A stretch of 63,938 nt of DNA, filler included, from Choristocarpus tenellus KU-1152 (taxonomy: Eukaryota > Protista > Phaeophyceae), in assembly GCA_964200185.2 (NCBI GenBank). It is 9 parts of 9 records of this genome, joined end to end, with 100 filler letters (N's around TTAATTAATTAA, not from the genome) between each part and the next. Parts side by side here need not be neighbours in the genome. Positions count along the whole stretch, not along the records: positions 38,474 to 41,860 come from CAXNAD020020379.1; positions 41,961 to 63,938 come from CAXNAD020000313.1; 7 more parts are not named here. One strand, given 5' to 3'. Positions 41,401 through 63,938 of the stretch are shown piece after piece. Every line of letters starts with the position of its first letter. Position 1 is the stretch's first letter. The notes under the pieces are model-generated. The model was not told the origin of the DNA. It searched no databases and worked only from the letters and a program-made list of their open reading frames with translations. Made by a program: the position numbers and the translations under genes.

Positions 41401-42381
41401 GTATGTATTGTGGGTTGTGGCACAACAATCACACGACCGAATAGATGCTGGTTGTGCACGCACCACTTGATTGACCGACATGGTGAAGGGACCCCCCGCA
41501 GGTTAGATTCCCAAGGATGAGTACATCCTTGCACGATTTGCCTACAGATACCGTAGGCCTGGTGAACAGTCGATTAACTGATGATGCGCTGTGCTCCCCT
41601 GCCCTCGTACGCCTCAGCTTTGGAAGGGCGAGAGGAGCGTAAGAGCTAATCAAGGAGGAGGGAAAGCGACAGACATCTATATCAGTCAGTCGGGTGTAAT
41701 GTGCTCTACATCGCAAAAACACACTGCATTACCCCTCTTTTTAGCTCCAAGTAAACAATGCGTAAGTAAGCAGAGTACTATTTGCCAACTAACGACAGAC
41801 ATCATCGTTCGTGCAGGTTGTAACCTTGTCTGCACAGCCACCCACCTTGCCCTCACAAGGNNNNNNNNNNNNNNNNNNNNNNNNNNNNNNNNNNNNNNNN
41901 NNNNTTAATTAATTAANNNNNNNNNNNNNNNNNNNNNNNNNNNNNNNNNNNNNNNNNNNNGATTAGAAAATTTCTAGGAAACGGAATGATAAATTACAAC
42001 GATAGATACTCCTTGCAAAGCATAAAGGATAATATCTCTCTTCTTACCGAAGATGCTCTATATGAAATCAATACTGCTGGTTCTAATAAATCATGCCTAG
42101 TTAAAAAGGCTAGTTTTTATCAATCTCTCCGCTTAGTTCTGTTCTATTTCCTGTTGTATCTAAATAACGTATCTTCATAACCTTTCCCCCCAGAATTATT
42201 AATTGATTGATACAATAAAATTATAAATATATTATAATTAACAACCAATTAATAAAAACGAAAAAATTAAGAAATTAGTCTGGGTATTAGATAGTTATGG
42301 AGAAGAAGACCTATGCTTTATCAGTTCTGTGTTCGGGAACTACGTATCCAAGAGTAAAAACAGCATCTTCATAACCCTTAC

Positions 42382-42670
42382 TTAGAGAATCAAAGTTTTC
42401 GCTATAGCATACTGATGCATATTCCCATTTTGAATACGGTAACATAAAATGAAAAAGCAGATGCTTAACTCTTCGCATATATCACTGTCTGTATCATTTA
42501 TATGGTCTTGGATATAGTTAATACTTTCAATTGCTTTTTCGGTACCTTTTTTATTTAGGTGCAACCTCTTAAGGATATCTTCTTGTTTCAATTTTAAGTC
42601 TAAAAAATCTTTTACCTTAGATATTTCACCTTTAATTTCGCCCTTGAGTTTTCCATTATCAAATCCACTT
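42382..42670 (-). pseudogene. Bacterial-like gene 3' fragment, possibly an Rpn / PD-(D/E)XK nuclease-transposase C-terminus
   Basis: AT-rich frame GFDNGKLKGEIKGEISKVKDFLDLKLKQEDILKRL...; the KGEIKGEI repeat resembles Rpn C-termini. The 5' end is replaced by the intron fragment. Confidence 0.35.
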
Positions 42671-42789
42671 TGCCTTCAGCTTCTTTCAGCCAACATCTCA
42701 CGATGTTAACCCTGCCTTAGCTAATGGACCGCTCTAATTCAGCCCATAGGGGACTTTAACCCCTCACTCTCGCACCATGCCCGGCGCAC
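42668..42789 (-). ncRNA. Bacterial group II intron, 5' fragment (domain I only)
   Basis: Minus strand reads GTGCGCCGGGCATGGTGCG..GGGGTTAAAGTCCCC..TTAGCTAAGGCAGGG..CATCGTGAGATG..CTGAAAGAAGCTGAAGGCAAAG. This has the canonical GUGYG start and the domain I pattern of IIB (class E-like) bacterial introns. Confidence 0.8.
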
Positions 42790-42935
42790 ATATATGTATT
42801 CTTCATGGTTGGTCTGAGATTGGTAAACGTTCTTATGGAGAAGTTGATGGATTTCGCAGCGAAAGAAGAAGCATTGTTGCTGACCATGTACCAAACAGTA
42901 AAGATATCACTGGCTGCGCAAATACTGATTGCTTC
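42790..42935 (+). pseudogene. IS630-family transposase fragment
   Basis: HGWSEIGKRSYGEVDGFRSERRSIVA...GCANTDCF resembles the IS630 (DDE_3) segment after the first catalytic Asp. Confidence 0.6.
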
Positions 42936-43198
42936 TGGCTTTTTCACATCCATCATATTCTGCTTGATATTCATATTATGGAGCAAGTTTGGTAAAAACC
43001 TCAAAGCTGAAAAAACCAAAGATGGAGCAAATAAGATTTTAACTGCAAAAGAAGTTAAAAACGCTCTTCGCAAGTGATCTAAAAATAGGCGATATGCTCC
43101 TTGTAAAGGATATGGAAACCATGAACTTTCTACTATCTGGCGCTATAGGTTCTGGTAAAGCCAACTTAATGCATAATATGTTGCCTCAAATAGTTGAA
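42936..43198 (+). pseudogene. traD: F-type conjugative coupling protein TraD fragment (Rickettsiales RAGE-like)
   Basis: TM segment + WSKFGKNLKAEKTKDGANKILTAKEVK / DLKIGDMLLVKDMETMNFLLSGAIGSGKANLMHNMLPQ. Frameshift at about 43075, degenerate Walker A (GKA), truncated after about 43198. Confidence 0.8.
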
Positions 43199-44499
43199 CC
43201 AAGGTTCACAAAATTTTGTTCCCCTCAAAAACATGATTTTAAAATTCACCATTATCAAAGTAGTCACAAACAGCCATGTGTCTAAAATGTTAACTCACAG
43301 AAAGCTGTCAGGTGGATCTCTGTCAATAAAGATTTATCGACCAATTGATGGACAAACAAAGAAGCTGTTTTTGAAGGTTTCGCCAGTAGTGAGGACGATT
43401 CCAGTCATTTTGAAATCACCGTTTGATACGATCGACTCCACAACAAATCGAAACATCCACACCAACACCACATACCAAGGCACGAACCAACCATAACTTG
43501 CAAACTGTAAGCCTGTAAGCATTATAGTTCGAAGTAGTGGTCGTGACGCGACAATGCCTCGGCAATGCTTGTCATTTACTTACGGTATATCATTGATTGG
43601 TGTGAAAGAGGGTACATCAAGTGAAAGCCAGGTCCACCTGCGCAAGGAGCACAGTAAGTTCTTGGATGTCCCTCCTAGTCAGGCAGGACCTGCCCCCTCA
43701 TACTCGGGAGGATGCTCCTTCTGCGATCTCTCCTTTGGGATGTGCATGGATTAGCTGGTTGCATATTTTACCAAAATTGATGTGCATGGTGTTCGGACTT
43801 CCCAAAATCCCCACTAGGATGTGCAGTAGTAGAGGTGGCCACGAGGTGTTGGGGTGACATGAAGACTAGACCTACCAACCAATGTGGACAGTTGCCTGAT
43901 GTGTAGGAAAAGAAAGCCTGTGAGCCTATATGTGTGCAATGGAAATACAACACTTGGCAATCAATCGATGCCGCCCACACAATTAACTATTGGCTTTGAT
44001 AGTATTCCGATATCCGTCGTTCACGAACGAACGACATATCAAAAAGGCCGTCAAAGACGACAGAGAAGGCAAGAGCTCAGTATCAGGCAGTCAAGACTCA
44101 AAGTAATTTTCACCTAACTTCTTTGAATTCTGTAATCATAATAAACAAGTAGGTGTGGAAAGAGGGGCTGTCTATTGTCATACCGATATTACGATATTGC
44201 ACATTCTGCAATGATATCGTTTGAGGTTCCCTGTCAGGAATCCTGGATTCCAGGGTAGGATCTTCCATGGGACTGAACCATAAATCTCTTCAAGACAACA
44301 GTCCCACAGGTAGTGGACTTCTCTTCATTCAGAAATACCAAGCATCAAAGCTTGTGTCTTTGATGTTATGTCTTGTCACTCTGATGATCGACACACTCAT
44401 GAGATCCCCCACACACTGCAGTCTTGCACTTGTCCAACCTTAACCTCGTCCCCTCGGTTACTGTTTGTCTTGGTCCGTCTGGTTCATCTTTCCTGGTAA

Positions 44500-46250
44500 T
44501 TCTCCTCGTCACTTGTACCTGAGTGAAACATGCCACCGCAGAATCACACGATTCACTCCAGCGGATTGATGGGGTGGTGCAGGAGCAGTGTCGTCATCCT
44601 TCAGCCATCGTGTCAGTTCAAGGTGACCATGACACCTACCATGTCCTTTTAGAGGACAGTGCATTTCCTCTCCTCGTTCAACCAGTCAGGAGGTGGTTAT
44701 CTAACAGGCACAGTTTGGTGATGTCATTGCATTATGCCTGCATTCATCATGCACCACGTTAACAGCTGTGCAAGAACCAATGCTGTGCCACCCTGATGGC
44801 TTCAGGACCTCCTGAAACTCCAGCCTTATGGACACAGCTCCAATCATGTTTTTTGCATATTCTAGCGATGTCTCACATTCTCGTTCAACACCAGAGGGAA
44901 ATCATTTAAGGTATTCCACCGCAGAGGTTCCTACTTAACTTTACTTTCAGATGAGCATGTCACCATAACTCTACACTCCCATCAATAGGGCCCAGTATCC
45001 CCTGAGATTATTGGTATTCGTTGTATGGAATTTTTGCTGAAAATCCTAAAGTATATTATTTTCGAGCCTTGATTGATACCGTGGAATGGTGTTCACCTAG
45101 CAATTTAGCCAGATTACACTCTTCCCCCGATATCCCAGTTCTAAAGATCGGTCTGGCATTATAGGAAGATGTCCAAAAGGTTTTGATCTTGGCGTTCACC
45201 CCTGCCTATGGTCTTCCTCGTTCGGACTATGTCCGACTCCAAAGACATAATCAACTACAGGGAAAGGTGGATCGTCACGGAACAGAGGAAGCCACCCTAA
45301 CCTCGTCTTCAGATCGGTCATCAATAAGTGCACCTGTGACCCTGTTGTCGTCCTCATCGTGCTGAGCCCCCAGTCATGCTCCATCAATGTGTGTCATACT
45401 AAACAATATAGCATACTGCGAAGTATTTTGTGCCAGTATCCTGGTTATCGGGTAGCAACTCATTACAGATTCAGTCATGCCTGGACAATCCAGAGGTCGT
45501 TCTTGCATTGTAGGTAAGAGGTCGTGGACACTAGGGTCAGTTGCTATCGCTATACTCCTCGTCCCTAAGGATGATCAGATGGATTTGACTCCTATCCATT
45601 TGAGAATGAGTATATTTAATTGACATCTTCGCATGGAGTGGCAAGGGTCAGAAGTTGACACCAGTCAAAAACCACTTGATCCTCACGCCTTGCTTATAGC
45701 CTGTTCGTCTGTCTCCAAACATTTTTACGTACCCTTAGTTAAGGTCTTACCCTTACTTAAGGTCTTACAATAATATTCGAAGAAATCAAACTTGGTTAAA
45801 TAGTTCTTTGCGCAGATACCCATCAACTCCAATACCTTAATAAAGAATATATATGTTAGCAGGGTTTTTACATCTGGCACCCGTCAAAGAACAAGAAGAA
45901 GGTAACTTAATCGTAGACACAGTAAGCGATGTGGTATGTATTTCAGATGCACTTGTTTGCAGTCCCCCCCAACTCAAACGTTTGGGTGCGCATCCTGTTC
46001 CACCTAGTGCAATACATTTGCGTACAGCTGACTGTTCACCACTGCCTGTACTTGGATTTATTTGTTTTGCATTTTAACTTGGTGATACCGCATTACCCAT
46101 TGAAGCTCTGTTGATCCCAACTAGATAAAATAATACTTGATAATAGTTTCGTACAGACCTTCAGTGCAATCCTTGATTGGCAAGAACGTCTCTCATTCCA
46201 CAACAGTTTGTGTATCATTCCAGCAAGATATCACATGACAAGGAGCCCCA
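44500..46250 (+). mobile_element. Ty3/gypsy LTR retrotransposon relic (gag to aspartic protease)
   Basis: 45853-46190 reads LIVDTVSDVVCIS...LRTADCSPLPVLG (retropepsin-like). A degenerate knuckle LCQYPG...SCLDNP lies at about 45428-45492. DNA is homologous to 62760-62965 (minus). The left boundary is approximate. Confidence 0.65.
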
Positions 46251-46255
46251 CACAA

Positions 46256-46514
46256 GATCCAATGTATCTTAGAGGGTAGAGCTGCATCCATTCGGGGTCC
46301 AAAATTCAAAGTTGCGAATTTCATGTAATTTTGTCTTTCCTGTCTGTGTGGAAGTGTCAATATCCTTGTTTAGGACGCACCTTTTCATAACGTACACATT
46401 TTACCTACTCCGAAACATTTTGGAGTAGGAAAATGTCATAAAAAAGCTCATGGGAAGCCAAGCCCCAAGTGGACAAACGGGGCAAAACTCGTACCCTCTG
46501 CAATACTTTCACTC
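46256..46514 (+). mobile_element. MITE family A, TSD ACAA
   Basis: acaa|gatccaatgtatcttagagggta ... taccctctgcaatactttcactc|acaa. Confidence 0.92.
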
Positions 46515-47031
46515 ACAATAAGTACGTGATACAAGTACTACTCCTTGATGTTATGTCGTGAGTGTGCAACATGATTTTGACCCTGTACCCGTCCGTTTAC
46601 ATAGACAGTACAATACACCACCTGTTCATGAAATCATTGTCTCCGTTGCACTGACAGCCTGTCCGTTGATGCTGACATTGCATGGAGCCAATCATCTTCG
46701 GTGGTGAGAAAACCAAAACATACCGTATAACACTCAGGAAATTCCATGTTAGATATAGTACAAGTTATGTTGCATTCTATGTTATTTATTTTGGGAAGAT
46801 ATCATTATTGTAGGTGGTACTGTGACAGACAGGTCCCGTTGGGAGCTAAATATCAGTTTAGATCCACTTTCTCGCGTGCACACATGTGTAATGCGCGCAA
46901 CACTTTGTCATCATTGGTGGTATTCAGAGCAACATAATCCATCGAGATGTTCTGATAATTCCCCGACCACTTGCCGTTAATGGTCACGATGTGACGTCTA
47001 ACCACCAGATCCAGGATTCAAGATCTGTTTT

Positions 47032-47821
47032 GAGCTAAAGTAAACGAGAGGTACCCAAATTTGGGTTGTAGTATCCTAGAGGGTAGGAAGTTCAGACCAG
47101 GTTATCAATTCGGTGCTTGATTGTGCCAAAGTATCTTAGAGGGTAGAGCCGCGTTCATTTGGGGCCAAAATCCAATGTTGTGATTTCCATGTAATTTTGA
47201 CTATCGTGTTTGTTAGGACGTGTCAATGTCCTTGTTCCGGACATAGCTTTTCATAACGTACACATAACACCTACTCTGAAATATTTTGGAGTAGGAAAAT
47301 GCCATAAAAAATCCGAGATAAGCCAAGCCCCAAGTGGACAAACAGGGCAAAACTCGTACCCTCTAAGATACTTTCACTCATTGGGTGTTGTAATATACCT
47401 CACTTTGATGCCCATTTTGCGGGTGATTTTCCTTCGAGTTTGGTTCAGGCAAGGGAATGCAAAAGGAAGGTGCGTTCAGATGAAGAAAATTGCCCTCACA
47501 TCTGACGCGTTCTCTCATGTGACAAGGAAATCGCTACAGGGTCGTCCAGGCCCCCAATGGATGCCTGACCCCCCCTCTAGGATACTATGGGTCCAAGGTC
47601 GTTTTGGGTTTTAAGTCACCTTTTTCATGTTTTACAATTCACCCCTTACTTTTATGGATTAAGAGCAAAGAGTGACATGATGAAATCGTTGATTTCTCTG
47701 TTGTTTCCAAGTTTTGACAGAAATCAAAGTCTCTATGCATATTTGTACGAAGAGTCAATTTTTCCACATTTGTCAGCATCCTCAAAATGCAACCGCAGGT
47801 ACCTCTTGTTTACTCTGACTC
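47032..47821. mobile_element. Triple-nested TIR elements: outer 47032-47821, middle 47063-47593, inner family A 47123-47379
   Basis: Outer TIR gagctaaagtaaacgagaggtacc / ggtacctcttgtttactctgactc. Middle TIR tagtatcctagaggg / ccctctaggatacta. The inner A copy is flanked by att/att. Confidence 0.8.
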
Positions 47822-50800
47822 CTTCATCTCACATATTGATGACTTAGGTATTGGGCTTCGCACAACCAAGGCCCCTCATTCTCTCATGGAGATTTTTGCA
47901 ATGATCTATCCCTAAAAAGTAGATGGCACTGATACAATTCATTCAATACAATCAAGCCAAACCCTCCGTTGGATGTAGATCCTCGTGGGATGTTTGCTAT
48001 TGCATCCTAACGCAACTCTGTTGCTGTACCTCGAATGTCTACTTGATGTTAGTGTTTGAGATGGTCATGTACAGGTATGATAGTTGACTTGAGCATGAAA
48101 AGATTGAGATCCCACGTCCCTCTCAATGGTTTTCCCCTGAAGTAATAACTCGAAAAAATAATCTCTGTGGGAGATTTGTGTCCCTCCTAGATGGGCGCAT
48201 GATCTCTGGTGGACGAGAGTCCAAAAGTTTGGAACTGGAAGAGAACTGGATCTCATCCGGGTATTAGGGTTGTTACTCAAAAAGTAGGGAAACGAAAAAT
48301 TCGTTTCATTTTCTCAACAAGGATTAGACAAAAAAGACGTGCAATTCCTCAAAGTGAATTGGACAAGCTCTTTCTTCGCAACACACCTTACGACCTTTGA
48401 CCCCCATTAAGGCAAGGCAATGTCTAGCGCAATTTTCTATCCCTGCAAAGAAGGAAAACACAGATCCAATTCATTATCAAGGTAGGACAACTTTTCGATC
48501 ATATAAAGGACAGTAAACCCTCCGCTTCTGTGCAGTTCCTCTTAAGAGATCTGTTTTAGCGTAACCCACAAGAAAGGGTAGGGAGCAATTGTTACCCACT
48601 CACTATTACATAAGCTAAGCAAGGCATTGTGACTTGATCGCCACAGACTCAAGAACTTCTTTGTTACCAAATTACCTGGGACATTATGGTAGTAACCCTG
48701 GGTGACTAATTGTACAGTATTATGCTTCTCCATCATCGTGGATAAATTTTGGGTTCAATCCTGGAGAGGACAACCTTTCAAGGGACTCCCCCAAATTGGC
48801 CACATGGGCACTCTCTTGAGAAACCCAGATGATTCCTTTTCTTTTTTTTCCATGGGACTGCCTGCCCATGATGTGCTGGCCAGACATTTTTTTTTCTTGT
48901 GTGCAGGGACAGAGCCCATACTGGGGAGGGGAGGTGATGGGATGAACAGGTCCTGCTGGGAGCTCATCTCAGTCAGAGTCTTTCCGCACGCACACTTCTC
49001 CGTCGTTGGTGACATTTCAGAGAAACATAAATGATGGAGATGTTATGAGAGTTCTCCGACCACTTACCATTAACGGCCACAAATGACGTGACGTCCAACC
49101 ACCGAATCCAAGATTCCAGATTGGTTTTCATCCAATAGATTGAAGTCTTCAGTATTGGCGTCAATCACGCAAGGCATCTCGTTCACTCGTGGCGATTTGT
49201 CATTACCCCTCAGGGCTGATCGGATGCTGCCTTGTGCAGTACTAGATTTTACAACAATACTATTACGAATGAACCTAACGGGTAGGGCAGAAATCTCGCT
49301 TTCTAGATATTTTTTGAAGCGAAAATTCTTGTTAAATTTGGGACAATGAGAACATGTGTCAGAGGCGGGTGCGCATAGGATAGTACACACATTTTGTCAC
49401 CTTAAGGGTCTTAGCCAAGGACGAGGAAGCCTCAGGCATGCACACTTCTGCAGGTTGAAGCCTATTGGCGGTGTTCCTCAACACGCTCCCAGTGCACTGA
49501 AGGGGCCCTTGCACCTAGGCAAGAAAGTTGTACCACCACGATCTCAAGTATTTTGCTGGCCTTACACACCAATTACACCTGCCAATGGTTCTTGGACTGA
49601 CTTCAATATTCACCCATCCATATGTTGAGCACCTTGAATTCCTGTCCATATTCCACGGCAATGGGCTTCATGTAGTGGGTGATCATCTTCTCCGGAATGT
49701 GCTGCATGGAGGGTTTGTACTGTGTGGTTTCGACCCTTCATCCTAAATTTGTATAGCCGCTTCAAGCGATATAACCTCCCTCAAGACCTTAGCACTGATC
49801 CCTTCTTCATCACGTACCCCCATCACCTGTTTTCTACCCCATACGTTACCTTTATAAAGTTCTGAACTCCAGATCCATGCTTCAATTCCTTCCAATTAAC
49901 TTTCCCTTCTACACTTCATACTTTTGCCTTTTCATATGTTAGGACACTAAACGTTTACTAGTCAACCAAAACAACATCCCCCCTCACAAAACTCAGATTC
50001 GGATTACTTCAACTACTGTTCATGGTTTCACACTCTTAAGAAATACGTAATTATATTATATCTCAAGAGTTGATCAGACTCGGCATTTTAACTCGATTCA
50101 GAACAAGAATTCAGCGAATTAATAACCCTCCTGGCTATAGATTCAACACCTTCGCAGTGGAAAGTTTTGGGCGGCTTGGTAAGCAAGCAGAAAGTTTCTG
50201 CTGAGTTAGCTACGCACGCGGTGGTAGGGGGAGAGGGGTAGGAGGCAACAGTAGGAAAGGGGCTATCAAATCCTGTTAGCAACAAATAGTGTCTGTCACA
50301 ACACAAATAGCTCTATTATTGAGACCTGTCATGGATTTTAAGCTGGAGACACCAGGGAGATGGGCAAGGAGGGGATTGTTAGATTCCTGACATGCTTTCC
50401 TAGGTCCTCACCATGGGGTGCAGGACTAAATTAGGTTGGAGGCATAGAAGGGCAGTGGTATAGCACAGCTGGTAGAAACTTAGTAAGTAGATTATAGTTT
50501 TATATAGTGCCCTTTGGCATTTTGTAGATTTGTCAGGGGAAATTATGTGGAATTAATTGTACCATTCGGGGATATATGCATAGCGTCATATCGCTCTGCT
50601 GAGTGCTGATTCCCAAGTATTTCCAAGTTGGCGTTAAACGGCTAAGTTTGTGGAATAGTTAGTTGCTGGGCCCCCATTATAATATGCTTCTATTATGCTT
50701 TATTATTATACCCTCTGACATTTTACAGATGTGTCGGGGGAAAAACCGATGAAAACCCAATCCAACATCAGAACAACACCTGAAAAAGTAATAGTTGTCA

Positions 50801-50982: not shown

Positions 50983-51194
50983 GAGCCAAAGTATGTTGGA
51001 GGGTAGAGCCACGTCCTTGTGGGGGCCAAAATCCAATGTTGCGATTTCGATGTAAATTTGGCCATCATGTTTGTTAGGAAGTATCAATATCCATGTTATA
51101 GACACACCTTTTCATAACATACACATTTTACCTACTGAAATATTTTGGAGTAAGAAAATGTCCTAAAAAAAACATGGGAAGCCAAGCCCCAAAC
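50983..51194 (+). mobile_element. MITE family A, 3'-truncated
   Basis: gagccaaagtatgttggagggtagagcc ... gggaagccaagccccaaac. The right TIR is missing. Confidence 0.85.
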
Positions 51195-52866
51195 GACACT
51201 AAAACACCTAGCTGTTGCGAGAACATGTCTTAGATGCATTACTAGCAGCAGTTATGGGGCATACACTCTCTAAAAAAAATAACTCTACTAATGGAAGGAT
51301 GAAGCCGTATGGTAGCTATAGGAGTGAAGACGTAGAAAGTTGCGCCTGTGTAATAGATTGTATCAACTACCAATATGAAAGGCCTTCCGTTCTTACTTCA
51401 CTAGGGTTGTGCTTGACGGATTGCTGGCATTGATATGTCCAAACGGGCCTACTCTTCACAACAAACCCGATGGTGCCCAACCCCCCACTCTGATTCATCC
51501 TGTCGTGGGATATCATTTGACCAAGTGTATACACATTGTCACAGTTGGAAGTGATCTTTATGGGCTTACTGTACATAATGCAGGAACAATGCCTGTAAAT
51601 GGAGGCCTTCCATACGCTAGTTGATACTATTTGATTGGCGAACACGACTTGCAATGACATATTGACAACTAGATGTTGTCTACAATATATGGCTTCACCT
51701 ACAGTAATTTAGGTGAATTTTAAAGAAGCGAGTGTACCCACCCATGACCTTTGCTAATAACACCTCTAAAAAATATATGCTTTCCAGGATTGTTAGCGAC
51801 CGTTCCAGCCTCTTACACTCGCTAATGTGGTACTACTCACTATTGGTAATATTTTGCATTCTAGGGTACCTAGAAAAAAAAAAGCGTCCGCCCCTGATTC
51901 TTCTGCCTATCTCACTAATCTTGAGTTGGCACTATGAAGGCGGTATTGGAACTAGTCAAGCCCTATCCATCTTGCCCACCAGCATCGCATGTCTCTCTAC
52001 CACCTTGAAATGCATGATGAGATGCCAAGAAATCGCCACTACTTGTGTTGTGGCGCAGATATAGTTCGTCACAGGTGTACTACTACTCCCCCCTCTTCCT
52101 GCTAAGCCCTCTCGACCCCTCTAACACTCACTACATGATGACTCACCAACTCGTTCAGTAATACCTCTATTGTTATATATCAACACCCCCAAAGATTTCT
52201 TCTACACTATTATACCACGACGGTATTGAGGTGGAATAACTACTTCTACTACGAAAAGATAAAATCATAATAGTTGTTGGGCTTTCGGACCTTAAGCTGT
52301 TTTTCAACAGTGAGTCTTGTAGGTGGTAGTGCACTTGAGAAAGACACATCCAACAGAAGTACTATATATTTTTCTCGGTAAGAAGCACGACTGTGTGCAT
52401 TATTGGATAATGGTGAAGTATATATATACATTGTGATCATGTATTGATCTTGAAGTTGAAACTACAAATCAAATTCGTCGAATGATCCCATTTTCTTCTC
52501 ATTTAATAATATTTTTCTCAATTTATTCTTATGTATGTTGGGTTTTTGTATATAGGAGAGTTACGTTTTACTAGATAGGATGCATCCATCTACTTTGATA
52601 AGAACATGGTCTTGAGGTATGTCACGCCATAATTTTTTGTTAAACCTCACCGTTTTTACCCCGAACAGACAAGGCATTTGATTTGAGATAGACAACTTCT
52701 TCTGCGTGGCAACAAGCAACGGGATGTTGGACTGGCAAAGAGCAGAGAGTGCATGAGACACAGCGAACCTGGCGGAACTATTTGTCCCCCTCGGTCACGA
52801 AATATTCTGTGGAACGAATTCAGTTGAAAGGTTGCTTGAAGGTTTCCATCTATTTCCGAGACGATC

Positions 52867-54571
52867 ATGGCCTCTCCCAGGCGGTTCCAGCCAGGACGCA
52901 TCCTCCTTGCTCTGGCAGCTCTTCCGAGGCATGTAGCGAAAGCTTTTACTTTTGCTGGCCACGGCATGGGTCAATCACCCCAGCCGAAACTCCGCCTTCA
53001 ACACTCCATCACGGATATCAATGGGTCTACCCCTCCTGTCTCACCTGTATGTGTATCACCTGTACAGGGGGACAACGAACTAGTTTCCTTTTACCTTCTC
53101 AGGCACGGGGAGACGAACTTCAACGCCATCGGTCGCATTCAGGTTTGTTCGTTAGATAAACAAGGGGTCCACCTAAAATCGTTAGGAAGTATTCGATCTA
53201 TCCAGCCTATCACAGCACTGACTGAATTTCCTTTTGTGTTCATGTGCTCCGATGTACTCATTAGGGTACCCTCGACTCTTCAAGGCTTACAGATCAGGGG
53301 ACTTCGCAGGCCGTGGAGGCGGGAAAGAACTTGGCGTCGCTCCCGGACCTCGACCTTGGTAGTACTGTGGTGGTTTCACCTATGCGTCGGGCACAGCAAA
53401 CACTGGCCTGTGTAAGGGATGAGTTGAAGTTGGTGGGCAAGGACTTCTCGAACGTGGAGATCGTTCCAAGCATTAGAGAGATAGAACTCTTTGAGTGGTA
53501 AGTGAATAATTTAACCAACAAAATATACAAACCCGATTTAGCTCAGTACCTAGGTCTCTGACATCTCTATGGCCTTGCATCCCTCCTCTTCGAATGAGCG
53601 AATTCACACTGCAACCATTTGTGTTACATATTTTTCACAAGGTGACACTCGTGGTTCCTGTACCCTACGACTCGTTTTTTTTGTTTCGTTTCCTTCAAGG
53701 CAAGGTCAGCTGAAAGATGATTTGATTAAGGAGAGACCAGACCAGTATGCTAGCTGGGTCAAGGATCCCGCAAACTTCAACTTGGATGGACGGTGAGGAG
53801 AAAAAATATTTGCATTGCAGCTCTGTCCTGGTATCAATTGTTGGGTAATAGACCGGGGAAACTGTTGCTTGAAGAAGCAATGCAATCCTTCCTGTGTACC
53901 AGATTATGGAGTGGGACAGTGCAGATTGTTTTCTGTTCCGAGGACTTGGTAGTTTGAAAGTTCGTTCCATTTGTAGTGCTGCTTTGTAAGTTGCGTTGCG
54001 CCCAAGCATCGGATGTAGTGAATATATGAATGTATCTGCCATTGCTTATTTCCTCTCAGGCCTGACCCTGTAAACTTGTCAATTTGGAAAGTGGTGCAAG
54101 AGGTTACATTCCAACCTTTTTGATTGGCTTGAAGTGACACGCTCTATACTAATAGTATTATATCATATTGACGTAAACATTGCTCATGGTACCAACTCCC
54201 TTAACTCTTGATTATCATGACTCCAATCCCAATCCTCCAGATATCCTGCCCGAGACCTCTGGGCAAGAGCAGAAAAGGCGTGGGAGGAGATTCGCTCCTT
54301 GCAGTCTGTCCAAAAACAACGGAAAACTCTGGTGGTAGCACACAATGCCATCAACCAGGCACTCCTCTGGACAGCACTTGGATCAGACGCCTCCTTGTTT
54401 CGTAAAATATCATGGCCCAACTGTGCAATCCTGGAGCTGCAGTGGCGCCAAGGTGAAGAGCGAGCAGAGAGGTATCGCTGGGTTCTTCCTGGTGCTTCAG
54501 AATTTGTGGAGGCTCATGATGCTGAAGCTCTTTGCAAGGGAACCCAAGATGACACCAGGTTCACATTGTAA
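52867..54571 (+). CDS. Histidine phosphatase / phosphoglycerate mutase family protein, CA1Pase-like, predicted plastid-targeted (exons 52867-53142, 53265-53497, 53700-53792, 54241-54571)
   Basis: All introns are GT-AG and phase-compatible. Motifs LLRHGET..N..GRIQG, SPMRRAQQT, IREIEL..WQG, LVVAHNAINQAL, NC. The N-terminus has a hydrophobic signal ending AKA-F followed by a Ser/Pro-rich transit-like peptide. Confidence 0.92.
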
Positions 54572-56219
54572 TGAACTTGTGTGTGCAAGATAGAGTTTTG
54601 ATGACATGACCCTTTCCACAATGGGAAGGAATGGAATATTTTGTTCATTTGGGATACAACAGCAGTCCACATTACCAATACCTTGCGGTTGCCGTCTTGG
54701 AATGGGGAGTGACACAAGGGAATAGAATATGTGCATTGAGCACACAAGTGAATGCTCTGCTTGGTCAGTATAGATTGCACCTGAAAAGGCAGAGCACAAT
54801 AGTTGGGACTGAGACTCAGCAGCCAAGGGCGGGATTATTGCTGAGGTGAATCTGACTAGGGAATTTTTGATTCAGAGTTACATTTTTTTTTTTACAAGTA
54901 TGCCAGGATTAATTGGTTTTCTGGTTAGACCAGAGGAATTTGTTGTTGTGATGTTAGGTGAAAGTGGGTGCTTCATAATATTGTTCAAAATGGGACCCAA
55001 GAATGGTGTTGCTGGTGATTGTAGAGGTGACAAAGTGGGAGGAGGCAGGGGCTGATGAGATATCTTATTCAAGAGACCTTATAGTACAACTGAGACAGGC
55101 ACAACCTCGTTTGATGTTTTGGTTCTGGAGCACTATATTTATAAAATAGCTCTGCTGTATGATAGAACTTCTCTTTTGGAGTTTACAATTTTTGTTGGAG
55201 GCAAATCCGAGGTCGTACAGCATGGATGGCAATGTTATTTTTTTGTTTTCCAGAGTAATGTCAAAAACTGCTCTACAATCTGAGTACAAAGTGGGGTTAA
55301 ATCAGATGACATGGACACCACCTATTGTATCACTCGGGGAACACATGCCTCATGCCTAAACAATAACTTTTAATGCATACATTAGAGTGTTCAATTAAGA
55401 ACATGAAATATGGATAGCCAACCGAACATGGGGATATATTTTGGACTAAAATAAAAGCTTCTTCAGCGTGGTGAAACGGGAGGAGGAACTCAAAGTCTAT
55501 TACATGTGAAGAGAAATGTTGGGGCATGCATTTAGAAATACTCTCTTTTTACTTCCAAGGAGTATCGTGATTGTTCTTTACAATCATTCAACACTGATAC
55601 CAGTGATTGTGTATGCGTGGGTAAGCCTCCAAAAGCAATACTAAACATTACATTTCAGGTGTTGCCCACTTTGCCCTGAAAGTAGACAACGGATTAGGAG
55701 ACCTCATACATACAATACGACACCCAAGAAAAATATACCAACTCTAGGGATTTACAAAGAACCACAATCACATGAATAATTCAATACATGTATGGTTGTA
55801 ATCTACAATGCTCTAATAAAGGTGTAAAGAATCGGCTCAACGTTGGCATGCCCCACCAATACCTACTTCTCCAGTATCCACTTTCTACTGCATCCAAAAC
55901 GTCAATGAACTCATCAAAGACTGCCCCAGCTCCTTGGATGTAGATAAGGTTGTAGTTCAATTGGTAGCACTGTGTGACTGTAGCGTATACGTACTGCTGC
56001 CAGCAACTAACATCATATTGACCTGCCAACTCTGTCATGTTTATTAGTCAGCCGTTTCATGGGGAAATCGCCAGCCAACCATACACTGGAGTCCTACTTC
56101 ATTCATGTTGCACAAATAACAAAATTCATTGGTAAGCACACAGTCTTAATGGCTTGACTCTGCCTCAACCTCAATCAAAACTCAGCCTTTGGAGGAGAAC
56201 ATCTTTCCAGAGCAGATCC

Positions 56220-57730
56220 CTACAACTCGTTCAACGTAAATTCCAACCTTGAAATACATGCGTAGTAGGGCAGAGCCTCCTGGCCATACTCTTCCGGCAC
56301 TGGGGCAGGTTCATGCTGCTCCATGCTAGACAGTTCCAATGCTGCTGGGGTGTGACTTCCGAAGCAAGAATCTATCCCATCGTAGCAATCTGGCGGGATA
56401 CTGATGCGGATATGGGCCTTGCTGTCCCCCCTATCCCTCCGTCTACTCTTTTTAGTAGGTCTGTGCATTTTGGACGTCTTCATGATTGTTAAGTGTGGGG
56501 TGAATCTAAAGTCGTTGTCATTGGGAGAAGGCTCAACTAGCTTGGATTCGACAAAACGGGCATGGATAGCAGCTGTCAGGCGACGCAGGCGATCTGCTTG
56601 CCTGTCTTCAACAAGGCAGGCATAGAGTACCCTATCACTGAAAGATCCCAGCCCTTCGAAAGTGAGACAGAGAGGTCCCCTCCAGGCAAAGTCCACCTCC
56701 AGTTCTCTTTGACGATCCTCATATTTTCCTTCTTGTGATTCTTCAACTTGTTTTCTTAACTCCACCTCTATCTCTTTGAGTCCTGCAGATGCTGATGTGG
56801 GCTTGTCTTTACCGTCATTTGCACACCTGGGCGACTTGTATCCCACTTCTTGCATAGGGAGGAGGCCGTATTCAACAAGTAGGTCACCACAGGAGGTCAA
56901 CACGTCCTGGGCCATCTGTATAAAGCGAAGATAATTCGGATGACACAAGAATGTACATATATCTTCGAGTAGGATATGATCCTAAATATATATATCGTAA
57001 ACAAGTAATGCGTCAATTGATCAGGCACAATACTACATACACTGGACAGGGATATCCTTAGGGTGTCAAGAAGGTAGGTCTGCACAGGGACATGGCCACT
57101 TGGATGCTTGTCCATGATCACCAAGTAAAGACGTATAACAAATTCGACCGTCGTACTGCATCGTACGATGTGCACCTGCTCTCATACAATCCGCCTTCCC
57201 ACCCTGTCAACAGTCAAGGGAAAGCACAATCGCAGAAAAATCACCGATCACCTTCAAAGTGCCATCATTATCTGAGAGTGTGGCAACAAATAGGGTGAGG
57301 TGGAGATTTTGGACGGGAATCACAGCTCCCTGCAAGTCTGGCCTTGAACTTAGAACTCTTTGCTGGACCAACTCAATCTGTGACAGCAACCAAGGGTTGA
57401 ACTTCAACAGGTCATTTAGCGTCTGGGGAGTGACATTTTGAGTTTTTGGCAGAAAAGGCTGCAGTGATGATTTGGGAGGACAAAAAATTACTGCACTGTC
57501 CCTATAGTCACCTCTTGCCATATCTTGGCGTTGTTGATCCTGACCGAGAGGAAATGGTTGGGACGAGAACGACGTCCTCCATGTTGGTCACGAATAGACA
57601 TATATAGAGCTCGGATATCTGAAACGTACGAATCCTTTTCCCAGAAGCCCCTGGGGATAACCCTCCGACTGGAAAGGAGGATCGAGCTTGTAACTAACGA
57701 GTTGACTGGAATGGTTAGTGGGCATCTCAT
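56220..57730 (-). CDS. AKAP7-like 2H phosphoesterase (2',5' RNA ligase-like domain); exons 57730 (or 57601)-57512, 57377-57252, 56915-56220
   Basis: RPNHFLSVRI, LHLTL, LTFEGLGSFSDRVLYA, FTPHLTIMK: two HxT motifs. Introns are GT-AG, phase 0. The start codon is uncertain. Confidence 0.9.
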
Positions 57731-58153
57731 GACTCTACAACAAAAACATGCTCTGAGGCCAGACGTCGTGGACTCTTCACCTGGTTTAAGCTCTCTTCCA
57801 ACAGAGGGAATACAAGGAAGAAATCGCGATATTGCAACCCCAAGATAGTCTAAATTGCGCTCTGCTATCCTCAATCACTGTGTCTATCTTTATCGATGTG
57901 TGAAAGTCATACAATATTAATAATTTTTACATTGAAGGATTAGGGGTGTAGTTTGTTGGGAAAATGCAAGGTGACAAATGATGAATTATGGTGCACTATC
58001 TAATCCCAATCTCATATGAATCGTGTGATTCTGTGGAGGCGTGGATCACAAAAAAATCCCTGTGAAGAGAATCACCAGCCAACACAAACAAGACAGACCT
58101 AAACAGAGAGGACGAGGTAAAGTTTGACAAGGAGGGTGGAGGGTGGAGAGTGT

Positions 58154-58431
58154 CAGGAGGTGACGTCATAAGGAATCCCTTGACTCTTGTATCTCTTGAT
58201 GAAGAAGTCCACCTGTGAAACTGATCTCTTTAAGAGAACCACGCCGATGAATGGACCCTATTTCACTAAAGATCTTTCACTGGAATCTGTCCAAGATTCC
58301 TGACAAGGAACCTCAACCCCGACAGGCGAGAGTGAATGATCAGAGCGGCAGGAGGTGATGTCTTAAGGAATCCCTTGACTTCTACTATCTCTGAAAAAAT
58401 AAGTTCACCTGTGAAGCTGATCTCTTGAAGA
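58154..58431. repeat. Local direct duplication (about 83-bp core, 195-bp spacing)
   Basis: caggaggtga(c/t)gtc(a/t)taaggaatcccttgact...cacctgtgaa(a/g)ctgatctctt at 58154 and 58349. Confidence 0.85.
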
Positions 58432-59219: not shown

Positions 59220-59564
59220 GGGGAACCACCACAGATATACCTTTTCCACTTCCTCACGCGAAGGACAGAGATATTTTCCACTCAAAGGTTAGGGTTAGGG
59301 TCAGGATCAGGGTCAGGGTTGGGGATGGGTTTTCCAAAATGAATGTGAAAATGTGAAAAAGAGATTAAAGTGGTAGATCTATATTATTAGGTGGTGGCTC
59401 CCCAGTGCCCACTGCACTGTTGTACCACAATGTGAAACTTCTCCAAGAAAGTTTCCTTGACAGTTAGGGATATTTTTCACACACAAGTTAGGGTTAGGGG
59501 TCGGGGTCAGGTTTTTTAAAAAGCGTGTAAAAAAGTAAAATTATTGGTATAGTGGTGGTTCCCC
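59220..59564. mobile_element. Putative MITE(s) with TIR GGGGAACCACCAC and internal TTAGGG tracts
   Basis: ggggaaccaccac at 59220; inverted copies at 59391-59403 and 59552-59564. gttagggttaggg occurs in both halves. Confidence 0.6.
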
Positions 59565-60699: not shown

Positions 60700-62620
60700 G
60701 AAGGTCACAAGAGTGCCCATAGCCACAAAGACGAAGGAAATAATCAACATTTGTGGATAAGCGATGACCAGGGCCGAGTCCATGTCCAGCAATGTTGTCT
60801 ATAGGGTACTGGACAAAAACGGGTTGAGAGACTGGTGGTTTACGTCTTGCAGTGGTAACGGTTCGCGTTTGGCGTGGGAGGTTGGCCTTGTGGGTAGCAA
60901 CGTTTCAATCTATCGAAATGAATGGAAAGCGAAAGTGGGTTTCCAAGAAATACGACCTTGTAGCTGATGGGTGATATCTTAAATATATCCACCCTTCTAT
61001 GGGTAAAGTAGCTTTGGATTCGGATAATCAGTTCTCTCATGTGGCCTATAGACTTGAGATATATCACCGAGTACGAAAACGGGGAACGTTTGACGTTGAT
61101 TGGCACGTTCCTGGTTCTCAACGTGTTTACGGAGGTTCCAGCGTGCAACTCAATGCACGCTGTGAAGTATCTATGCGAATCAGAATTAGACAAACCAAGG
61201 ATAATATCAACGGACAAATGAGCTTGTCTTACAAATAGATTGAAAAACAGAGTTTCACGCAGCTTTGAGCTGAAAGCTGTTTTATGGGTTATCTTTACGA
61301 AAGGCAGTAATGATGCCCAGCTATGCTCAGCAACATAGGTATACATTGCTAACACAGAACATTTGTAACATAGCATGGACTCTCTCCAACACGGAATTTC
61401 CTTGAGGGTGATACTGTGTGATTTGGTTTTCTTTTGCCTGAAGCTAAACTGCAACTCTGCAACTTATACTGTTTTCAAATTCGGGAACTTATTTTGGAGC
61501 AGAACAATGTAGGTGCTCTGAAAATTGAAATAAACGTGCTACCAACATACGACGAACAATTGTTGCGGCCTCTTTGTACGGAGCAGGGCAGAGTACAACA
61601 AAACGAATGAGGTGATAAGTGACAGACAACTAGACGTATGAGCAGCACATCACACTATTTGCTGCAAGGGAATATGTTTCATGTTTTACCAAATCAATAG
61701 TAACTATTTGAAAATGTATGTCAACAGCCAATGTGGCTGGTGGGAAGCATAGCTTTGCTATGAACAGTCTCATGTAGTTGGCATTCCTGACCATTTGATA
61801 CCATGTGTACGAACATCAATATTGAACGTTGGCCAACGTTATGAGTCTCTAATTTATCTAATATATCCATATTCTACTTTGATAAAGTCAGTTGGATTGA
61901 TTTATTTGACTCTAAATCCTTGCTTGAATTAAGTAGTTACTATCATACCAACCTATAAAAAATCAAGAAGAAAGTACTAACTTCCCCTATTGAAGCTCAA
62001 TTTAGCCTAGATGTGTTAGAATTACATTAATATTATGTTTCCCAACAGGAAATCAGGTGTGCTAAGAAAATTATATTAGATAAATCTTGATTGGATGTAA
62101 TAACTATAGCCATCCTCTATTTACAATATGTGGAAATGCAAATAGTTTGATCCACTCACGATAATATAAAACACTGGAAGCTGTAAACAAATTGGCTCTA
62201 TGACGAACGAACCATTCCATAAGTTTAGACGTAACAATTAACTTTGTGTCAGACGTGAGTTTGAAGCCTAAGTGACCTCCAGACACGCTTCAACAGGCAG
62301 CGTGTAGTATCACCTAGTGTACGTGAGAAACGAACAAACTAATGAAAAATAAGTGGTGAACCAGTGGCAATATACAGGTGTATCGCACCAGGTGGAACAG
62401 GATGCATATCAAAGAGTTTGAGTTTATGATTATGAACCAAAAATCGCTTGAAATATAAGGCACATCACTTGCTGTATCTGCAGGTTAAGGTCTCGTCCTT
62501 ACGCTCTTCAATTATGTCAGATATACGAACCCTTTGCCATGAGAAATAAGAAAGCTTTGGTGTAGATCGGTATCTGCACAATGAATTGTTAACCAAAATT
62601 AAATATTACCATATGACATT
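60700..62620 (+). mobile_element. Highly degenerate Ty1/copia pol relic
   Basis: Eroded motifs in copia order: WISDDQG..HV (protease), MWPI / LQHGISLRV / LFWS / NVLPT (integrase), KYKA (RT). Many stops. Confidence 0.4.
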
Positions 62621-62639: not shown

Positions 62640-63938
62640 GAAAGTACTTCGAGACAGACAGGCAGGCTATAAACGATGCTTGAGGAGCAAGTGGTGTGAC
62701 CAGTGTCTACCTACGACCCTTATCATTCCCTATGCTGGTGTCAAGAACACCACATTCCTTCCCAAATACACAGGAGTTCGTCCTATCTGACCATCCCTAG
62801 GGACGAGGAGTTTAGTGGGTCATCTACGTAATGTCTATCCTAGTGCTCTTGGCGCCAACGATCCTTGCCTCTCTGACTCGACAGTAGCCGACAAGTAGCC
62901 TCGGGATTGCTGAGGCATAAATGAGTTGAGTGACCAATATTTCTCCTTGCCGAGCAATCCGGGTACTGAGTGAAAGTGAGTAAGAGCTTTTCCCTGTTCG
63001 TCCAATTGGGGCTTGGCCTCTCAGGTGTTTTTTTATGACATTTTCTCATTCCGAAATGTTTTGGAGTAGGTAAAATGCATACGTTATGAAACGTTGTGTC
63101 CGGAACAAGGAATTTGGCGCTTCCTACCAAACACGATAGCCAAAATTACATCAAAATCGGAACATTGGATTTTGGCCCCCAAATGGAACCGGCTCTACTC
63201 TCTAAGATACTTCGACTCCACTGACAAATGTTGTGTGGTGGGGTAGTACAATGGTGACCTATACAATTACTTGCCATAGCAGGGGTGCCGGTAGGCGGAG
63301 GTAGATACCTGGGCTGTGAGGTTGAACGACTAATAGCATGGGCTGATACAGATGGTATTGCTGATGACTGGACTGAAGAACATGTTGTAATTGGTTCTTC
63401 CTCCCAGTAATCCACCGTAGTGCATACACGTTGGTTCATTCATTATGAGATGCGTGGAGGACAGCACCAGAGTAAGTGGTGGGGAGAGAGGATCGACCAG
63501 ACAAGATATTGAACTCGGACGTTTTGCCCGATCACGGGCCTGAGCAAATGTAGCAGCAGGCTCTTCATGGATCTACTCAAGATGTATTTTGAGGAGTAAG
63601 TCATTTTCCATGAGCGCAACTTTCAATTGCTCAACGACTTCAGTGGTAGTATCTACAATATCAGATGGAAGTTTGGTACGACGAACATTCTCCAGAAAAC
63701 AATTCATGGCAGTGGTACATCGTGGCGTATATTGGTCTGCAGAGTCACTATCTCCTTGTTTCAGGGACGTTTGCCTACGGACAGACACACGCAATAATTG
63801 TGCCATTGTGAATGTATTGAGTAATTAATCCTGTACATCTTCCGACGAGGTAGGAGGAGTAATGGGGATGAGATGTTCGTAGATAGTGCTGCTGGTACAC
63901 TGTAGACACCATCGGTGGAGTAGATTAGGAAATGCAGA
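62640..63938 (-). mobile_element. Ty3/gypsy gag relic, same family as 44500-46250
   Basis: SLKQGDSDSADQY..R (retrotransposon gag). CCHC knuckle CQYPDC...GHSTHLC after MITE removal. actcctcgtcccta(g/a)ggatg(g/a)tcagat is shared with about 45555. Confidence 0.7.
62968..63218 (-). mobile_element. MITE family A inserted in the gag zinc knuckle
   Basis: tact|gagtgaaagt ... ctctaagatacttcgactc|cact (TSD with one mismatch). Confidence 0.9.

Follow-up and report, generated by a model that had tools for sequence, protein, structure and literature searches.

A probable nuclear relic of Rickettsiaceae-type mobile DNA in the brown alga Choristocarpus tenellus

Among the species sequenced in the Phaeoexplorer project (10.1101/2024.02.19.579948) is Choristocarpus tenellus, a brown alga of an early-branching lineage. 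The window studied here is a stretch of 63,938 nucleotides from its genome assembly GCA_964200185.2, and the part analysed, positions 41961-63938, is the whole contig CAXNAD020000313.1 (21,978 bases). The first ~1,240 bases of this contig form an AT-rich mosaic block made of pieces of bacterial mobile elements, among them a fragment of the conjugation gene traD and the start of a group II intron. The block is probably a nuclear insertion, dead and without function, of DNA from a Rickettsiaceae-type plasmid or integrative element. Its pieces are bacterial and truncated, and they are physically joined to algal DNA at a depth like that of single-copy sequence. A first-pass annotation of the same DNA had described a scrambled Rickettsiales-like mosaic embedded in an algal nuclear contig. 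The mosaic is there. The word “embedded” goes too far: the block lies at the very start of the contig, and only its right border is visible.

Bacterial fragments at the start of an algal contig

The GC content of successive 500-nt bins is 30.8% (41961-42460), 38.8% (42461-42960) and 36.4% (42961-43460), against 43-48% further on, in agreement with the AT-richness noted at first pass. The 31-39% GC of the block is typical of Rickettsiales. The pieces are indeed short (93-320 nt) and truncated, and they are bacterial, of Rickettsiales type and pseudogenised, as had been proposed. Their coordinates are collected in Table 1.

The traD piece is an internal fragment of an F-type gene for the type IV coupling protein. 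It corresponds to residues ~109-220 (~112 residues) of the 652-residue Megaira TraD. The 51-residue translation of 43046-43198 matches the NCBIfam family TraD_Ftype (TIGR02759, E 5.3e-7) and the Pfam family TrwB_AAD_bind (PF10412, E 3e-5, 23.5 bits with a cutoff of 20.5); with no more than ~112 of the 652 residues to match, the TIGR02759 score stays far under the full-length equivalog cutoff. In a tblastn search of 72,556 plasmids, the five best matches of this piece are four Candidatus Megaira plasmids (85% identity) and a plasmid of the Rickettsia endosymbiont of Culicoides (80%); they are followed by enterobacterial F-type TraD at about 50%. The first-pass expectation of best matches in Rickettsiales is thus borne out. 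An upstream frame of 90 residues matches Rickettsiaceae plasmids only (55-63%, E down to 2e-14), and the E values of the two traD pieces are 1e-16 and 2e-14. Compared with Megaira plasmids, identity is 57-63% in the transmembrane part and 80-85% in the Walker part.

Ten matching proteins were found among 1.84 billion cluster representatives, the closest being 61-62% identical; two of the closest TraD matches are located on small metagenome contigs. A tree of 107 columns places the fragment among Rickettsiales-type TraD, as the first-pass annotation expected, and outside the well-supported clade of Megaira polyxenophila; its finer position is not settled by the tree. A search with the 90-residue piece for short TraD-like proteins returned none, and the junction-spanning open reading frame (ORF) of 63 residues had no record among 153 billion gene positions. 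The fragment does not have the composition of an intact TraD (Walker A of the form GxxGxGK[ST], Walker B and C-terminal domain). Its Walker A reads GSGKA, where all relatives have GSGKT, and there is a frameshift near 43058-43075. Fragments of traD beside mobile genes occur already in living Megaira plasmids: in AP017966 an integrase gene splits traD in two.

Upstream of traD lies the 5' end of a bacterial group II intron on the minus strand, also recognized at first pass. It starts with GTGCG at 42789, the 5' GUGCG start of such introns, and has domain I homology (85-93% over 123-125 nt). By blastn, a plasmid of Candidatus Bandiella woodruffii matches 42667-42795 six times with 86% identity, just upstream of ltrA. 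A 38-nt degenerate pattern of the intron, searched in one genome each of 185,579 species, was found only in two Rickettsiaceae metagenome-assembled genomes (MAGs). These hold 13 copies (twelve at contig ends in SGMAG-38 and one in SGMAG-19), all 93% identical over 42667-42791. The flanks of the copies all differ, which fixes the first base of the intron at 42789. Contigs with full-length introns align to the window over the first ~125 nt only, at 85-93% identity; the homology ends at 42667, and full-length relatives run on for ~1.8 kb. The Rfam family group-II-D1D4-3 scores 30.2 bits, just under its gathering score of 32. The piece has no reverse transcriptase ORF and no domain V, i.e., neither the complete ribozyme (domains I-VI) nor the intron-encoded reverse transcriptase is there. 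At one contig end in SGMAG-38 (contig38, 1-120) the first ~31 nt of the intron stand in three tandem copies, either a local repeat or an assembly stutter.

The neighbouring piece, annotated at first pass as an IS630 fragment, is weakly borne out. Its tblastn matches are a Francisella transposase (E 3e-4, 56% over 32 residues) and a Piscirickettsia IS630 transposase (E 0.07), and no Pfam or NCBIfam hidden Markov model (HMM) matches 42790-42882. On the minus strand this piece is the 5' exon of the intron, and the joint 42789/90 between them is therefore naturally bacterial. An exact 28-mer over this joint was found neither in the 185,579 species genomes nor in JGI metagenomes.

Left of the intron, the first-pass annotation suggested the 3' end of an Rpn-like gene. 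Part of that stretch is instead a fragment of the transposase IstA of the IS21 family, which had been overlooked. It matches the NCBIfam profile transpos_IS21 (NF033546) at E 2.6e-8, and tblastn finds 44-49% identity in 575 plasmids, where the gene is annotated as istA. The Rpn identity itself was rejected for the 97-codon open frame 42385-42675(-), which gave no significant match in Pfam, NCBIfam or tblastn, nor to two Rickettsiales Rpn proteins. Neither the PD-(D/E)XK core nor the C-terminal HTH of Rpn was recognized in it; a protein language-model search lists HTH_Rpn_C with a high score, as an unaligned lead only. The part of this frame upstream of the IS21 piece remains a coding-like stretch with no assignment. 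Repeat D8 had suggested another copy of IS21 at 42113-42248; this was rejected, as it has no HMM match and a shared core of only 12 nt. At the contig start, an ISNCY assignment is too weak to keep (NCBIfam transpos_ISNCY_1 E 8.9e-4, far below the cutoff; tblastn E 0.03; no language-model lead).

Pfam and NCBIfam scans of the open frames of the block gave traD and IS21 only, with no integrase and no other tra gene, and searches of plasmid DNA and proteins added none. An Rfam scan of the block gave no tRNA, no separate tRNA search having been made. The block is thus not a RAGE-type integrative conjugative element (integrase, tRNA attachment site and tra cluster); a traD fragment alone represents such an element here. 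The block has no possible function. The intron is without function because its catalytic domains and reverse transcriptase are missing, and traD because it has lost both ends and the threonine of Walker A and carries a frameshift.

The joint with algal DNA in raw data

The joint was followed in two public sequencing runs of one organism and one study, here called X1 and X2, which hold 81% and 65%, respectively, of the sampled words of 41961-44460. We compared their Logan contigs (k=31, made from unfiltered reads and independent of the deposited assembly) with positions 41961-46460. A third run, X3, from a different organism of that study, gave nothing that matched and has no bearing on the joint. 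An X1 contig matching 43071-43857 crosses the traD/host junction with 0 mismatches at a depth of 19.2. An X2 contig matching 43072-43632 does so with 0 mismatches at a depth of 7.67. Both carry 128 nt of traD, including the Walker region, together with 430-660 nt of flank of 48% GC, and both have the depth of host single-copy DNA. The next X1 contig (43828-44446, depth 20.5) enters a repeat family of ~30,000 summed depth, which recurs inverted at 58017-58316 beside host genes.

Within the block, the X1 contigs are exact or one letter off: 42031-42347 (depth 25.7), 42433-42696 (28.1) and 42853-42991 (37.7). The latter two stop exactly 30 nt within a repeat. Since the unitigs end at 42696 and start again at 42853, we set the limits of this repeat at 42667 and 42882; the 30-nt overlap means that the inner joints 42666/7 and 42882/3 are carried at nuclear-like depth. 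With the exception of 42667-42882, block unitigs have depths of 25.7-37.7 in X1 against 18.8-20.5 for host unitigs, and 6.75 against 7.6-8.4 in X2. There is no step in depth near 43200, successive bins having 35.5, 23.1 and 32.0. The first-pass annotation had held that a lack of reads across ~43200, or a jump of depth there, would speak for a contaminant or a chimeric contig end; contigs span the junction and depth does not jump.

An assembly artefact, in which leftover Rickettsiales reads of the culture were mis-joined to an algal contig end and nothing was integrated, would fit the position of the block at a contig end, the size of the pieces (93-320 nt is about k-mer sized) and the break in exact contig cover at 42992-43070. 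The assembly procedure would also allow for it, as most bacterial reads were taken out and scraps could stay. However, another assembler gives the traD/host joint exactly in two runs, and both inner joints as well, at nuclear-like depth. Each false joint would require a 30-mer common to both genomes, and traD itself is frameshifted and truncated. We consider the artefact very improbable. The exact junction-spanning contigs and their matching depth make a contaminant or a chimeric end unlikely, and integration at the traD/host joint is well supported.

An abundant copy of the intron unit and the origin of the block

One part of the block behaves differently. The 216-nt unit 42667-42882, i.e., the intron start with the IS630-like piece, has summed depths in its two bins of 73,459 and 163,448 in X1 and of 64,574 and 175,204 in X2, where single-copy DNA has ~20 and ~8, respectively. 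No variant letter reaches 10% in this unit, and the abundant copy is therefore identical to the window. The ratio of X1 to X2 depth is ~0.9-1.1 for the unit, 2.5 for single-copy DNA and 3.9-4.5 for host repeats. A ratio of about 1 suggests that the abundant copy sits outside the nucleus, in another genome compartment. The published plastome and mitogenome of Choristocarpus tenellus are without introns (PMC13280774), and an organelle source was rejected on that ground. Two explanations remain: the culture may contain an abundant bacterium in which the intron is multicopy, or the unit may have been amplified in the nucleus. As the unitig breaks indicate, the abundant copy continues differently past both 42667 and 42882.

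A search for the alga-associated full-length intron among 120 reverse-transcriptase relatives and nine contigs gave best 5' ends of 92.8%, and of 97.8% over 45 nt, none of them identical. Those intron relatives, 85-93% alike, come from other samples. Several mosaic pieces have extra copies of ~95% identity in the reads (42962-43061, 41992-42006, 42396), with depths of 50-150 in X1 and 6-22 in X2; these could be further inserts or a low-abundance donor. At the contig start, 41962-42078, extra copies reach a depth of 186 in X1, with variant letters at 41992-42006.

The high depth bears on the question of whether the bacterium belongs to the past. The insertion could be real and the donor still present: a Rickettsiaceae-type bacterium with a multicopy intron would now live in or on the alga, and the mosaic would be a recent spill-over, or else conjugation from a surface bacterium would have delivered it. 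This would agree with 73,000-175,000 summed depth per bin of a sequence identical to the window in both runs, with the depth ratio of another compartment, with intron-free organelles and with the Rickettsiaceae MAGs, in which the intron family is multicopy and breaks contigs. The cultures are not axenic, and in the Phaeoexplorer short-read genomes the reads mapping to bacterial contigs were taken out before the final assembly (10.1101/2024.02.19.579948). Moreover, all identifiable pieces are plasmid or integrative-conjugative-element cargo, with zero housekeeping genes. On the other hand, traD, IS21 and the unassigned piece have depths of 25-186 in X1, so that an abundant donor would need to lack close copies of them. 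The required depth is extreme, about 10^4 times nuclear, and the full-length intron of X1 and X2 was not recovered via the reverse-transcriptase relatives. We regard a still-present donor as possible but doubtful. The more specific proposal, that a Rickettsiaceae-type bacterium lives, or lived until very recently, inside the cells of C. tenellus, that its multicopy intron in IS630 copies is the ~10^5-depth sequence and that its DNA leaks into the nucleus, seems unlikely to us; if true, this bacterium would be the first of its kind for brown algae. In any case, an identical intron and IS630 unit at ~10^5 summed depth in the same samples implies that the bacterial source could still be in culture.

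Several points weigh against a nuclear insertion. The other copies of several pieces and the abundant identical unit indicate that such bacterial DNA may also be extranuclear in these samples. The cultures, as said above, are not axenic. In the literature searched, brown algae are not reported as hosts of Rickettsiales. One border of the block is visible, and the block lies at a contig end. X1 and X2 come from one study and may be the reads of the assembly itself, so that they give an independent assembler and not independent DNA. Finally, 42992-43070 is without an exact contig among the matches listed; the only copy there is ~95% identical (5 differences per 100 nt; depth 51 in X1 and 6 in X2). 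The link of the left part to the junction-bearing part of traD thus rests on the deposited assembly.

With these points taken into account, we still prefer a dead nuclear insertion. Its donor would be the mobile gene pool, a conjugative plasmid or an integrative element, of a Rickettsiaceae-type bacterium related to, yet distinct from, Candidatus Megaira and Torix Rickettsia. The block consists of at least five short pieces cut internally: IS21, the unassigned piece, the intron start with the IS630-like gene that it invaded, and an internal part of traD. Such pieces may have been end-joined at or after entry into the nucleus, as in insertions of organelle DNA and of Wolbachia.

Alternatively, the scrambled order may have existed in the donor, in a degraded integrative element or plasmid region, and may have been copied as one contiguous piece with no stitching of the kind seen in nuclear mitochondrial DNA (NUMT). 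The arrangement at the intron/IS630 joint is one natural to bacteria, traD stands beside intron reverse transcriptases, Rpn genes and transposase fragments in plasmids of Megaira and Bandiella, and the split traD of AP017966 points the same way. However, the abundant copy of the intron and IS630 unit in the same samples diverges past 42667 and 42882, the 28-mer over the intron/IS630 joint is in no bacterial genome or metagenome contig searched, and three of the joints cut into the interior of a ribozyme domain, of a transposase and of a coupling-protein gene and do not coincide with the ends of elements. Taken as a whole, this alternative has a minor share of our confidence. The positions of the joints within these genes, together with the differing continuations of the abundant copy, narrowly favour end-joining of donor fragments over a pre-scrambled donor order.

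The donor bacterium would have lived within the algal cell or in close attachment to it, and its DNA would have entered the nucleus after lysis of an endosymbiont or through conjugative delivery from a surface bacterium. That the contig breaks off within the block may be due to repeats and to the filtering of bacterial reads by the project. From the first-pass reading of a decayed nuclear insertion from a past endosymbiont, the joint to algal DNA and the loss of function stand; the NUMT-like stitching, the endosymbiont as donor and its being past we only infer. A past endosymbiont is a plausible reading.

The rest of the contig and comparison with known systems

The first-pass annotation described the contig as running without gaps into gypsy relics, host repeats and two intron-containing genes. 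The contig has zero N in its 21,978 bases, and host repeat families are present. Its gene table lists two intron-containing genes, one for a His_Phos_1 phosphatase and one for an AKAP7-like 2H phosphoesterase. At 56220-56948(-), an exon of 242 residues has 92% identity to a deposited Choristocarpus tenellus protein. The gypsy relics found no support in a Pfam scan of selected ORFs of the contig. No plasmid matched 43199-44400 by blastn, and tblastx against 15 Rickettsiales loci showed no further bacterial-like piece beyond 43200. The host repeat at 44221-44555 reaches a summed depth of 29,707 in X1 and has many deletion variants.

Table 1. Features of contig CAXNAD020000313.1, in window positions
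Feature	Position	Strand	Basis or remark
AT-rich contig start	41962..42078	+	weak ISNCY-transposase-like match only
IS21-family IstA transposase fragment	42311..42478	-	~51 residues, profile positions 134-185 of 294
Coding-like piece, no assignment	42479..42666	-	upper part of 97-codon open frame 42385-42675
First 123 nt of bacterial group II intron (start of domain I)	42667..42789	-	blastn, MAG copies, Rfam
IS630-like transposase fragment	42790..42882	+	tblastn only
Internal F-type traD (type IV coupling protein) fragment	42883..43204	+	profiles, tblastn, alignment
Junction and first non-bacterial flank	43199..43857	none	single copy; GC up to 48%
Host repeat with second, inverted copy 58017-58316 on same contig	44221..44555	none	inverted repeats I7, I9
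Two annotated intron-containing host genes	52840..57600	His_Phos_1 phosphatase (+), AKAP7-like 2H phosphoesterase (-)	gene table; Pfam AKAP7_NLS E 6e-13

Some other features of the host part may be mentioned. A host repeat of ~250 nt with an internal palindrome has four copies (46259-46515, 47126-47380, 50983-51192 and 62975-63218), 72-93% alike and one of them inverted. Its summed depth of up to 1.1 million in X1 indicates a very high-copy MITE-like family of the alga. Two direct repeats of ~34 nt, 59267-59300 and 59466-59499, lie 199 nt apart and each end in two TTAGGG units, i.e., they are interstitial telomere-like motifs. A 207-codon open frame at 60843-61463(-) resembles, by eye, the region after a retroviral-type integrase core, with no match in Pfam. 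A weak Rfam match at 48723-48825(-) to the plant snoRNA Z118 (25.9 bits with a gathering score of 48, E 0.84) is most likely due to chance.

Hosts of Rickettsiales are known among animals, ciliates and several algal groups (green algae, cryptomonads and eustigmatophytes). If an early-branching brown alga has a relic of their mobile DNA in its nucleus, this would document such contact as a molecular fossil, and a marine multicellular stramenopile would join the hosts of Megaira-like bacteria. The block is a hint of intimate contact between brown algae and such bacteria. There is also a practical lesson: a pipeline that discards “bacterial” reads ahead of assembly can cut genuine insertions short at the ends of contigs.

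The source type is represented by plasmids and RAGE elements of Rickettsiaceae (Megaira CP113868, CP104167 and CP084577; pRiCimp001, CP084574). Like the block, they have an F-type traD, whose N-terminal membrane part and Walker region are the same, as well as group II introns and IS elements. In plasmids of Megaira, Bandiella and Torix Rickettsia, the neighbours of traD are intron reverse transcriptases, Rpn genes, transposases and toxin-antitoxin genes. Unlike these elements, the block has no intact gene, no other tra gene and no integrase, and the Rfam scan, not a dedicated search, gave no tRNA site; it is a relic. In mosaics of nuclear mitochondrial and plastid DNA (NUMT and NUPT), short non-contiguous donor pieces are end-joined head to tail. 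Their donor is an organelle and not, as in our case, a bacterium, and for the block the stitching at integration is our interpretation.

The nucleus of Volvox carteri holds a rickettsial insert of ~9 kb (PMC4324946). As in our case, this is Rickettsiaceae DNA (of the Megaira group) in an algal nuclear genome, and it was taken to stem from an endosymbiont which may be absent from the sequenced strain itself (PMC4324946). Volvox carteri differs in being a freshwater green alga with rickettsial endosymbionts known in its relatives, and its insert has four chromosomal-type genes in synteny. C. tenellus, in contrast, is a stramenopile, a brown alga of the sea from which no Rickettsiales are known, and its block, of at least 1.24 kb, holds only scrambled fragments of mobile elements. 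Nuclear insertions of Wolbachia in arthropods and nematodes were reportedly described by Dunning Hotopp et al. in 2007. These too are Rickettsiales sequences that lie in the nucleus of a host; most have no function, and many are fragmented and rearranged. They differ in having animal hosts and germline-resident symbionts and in reaching genome size, whereas C. tenellus has one small block. An insertion of this kind is already known from Volvox and from hosts of Wolbachia; the host group is new.

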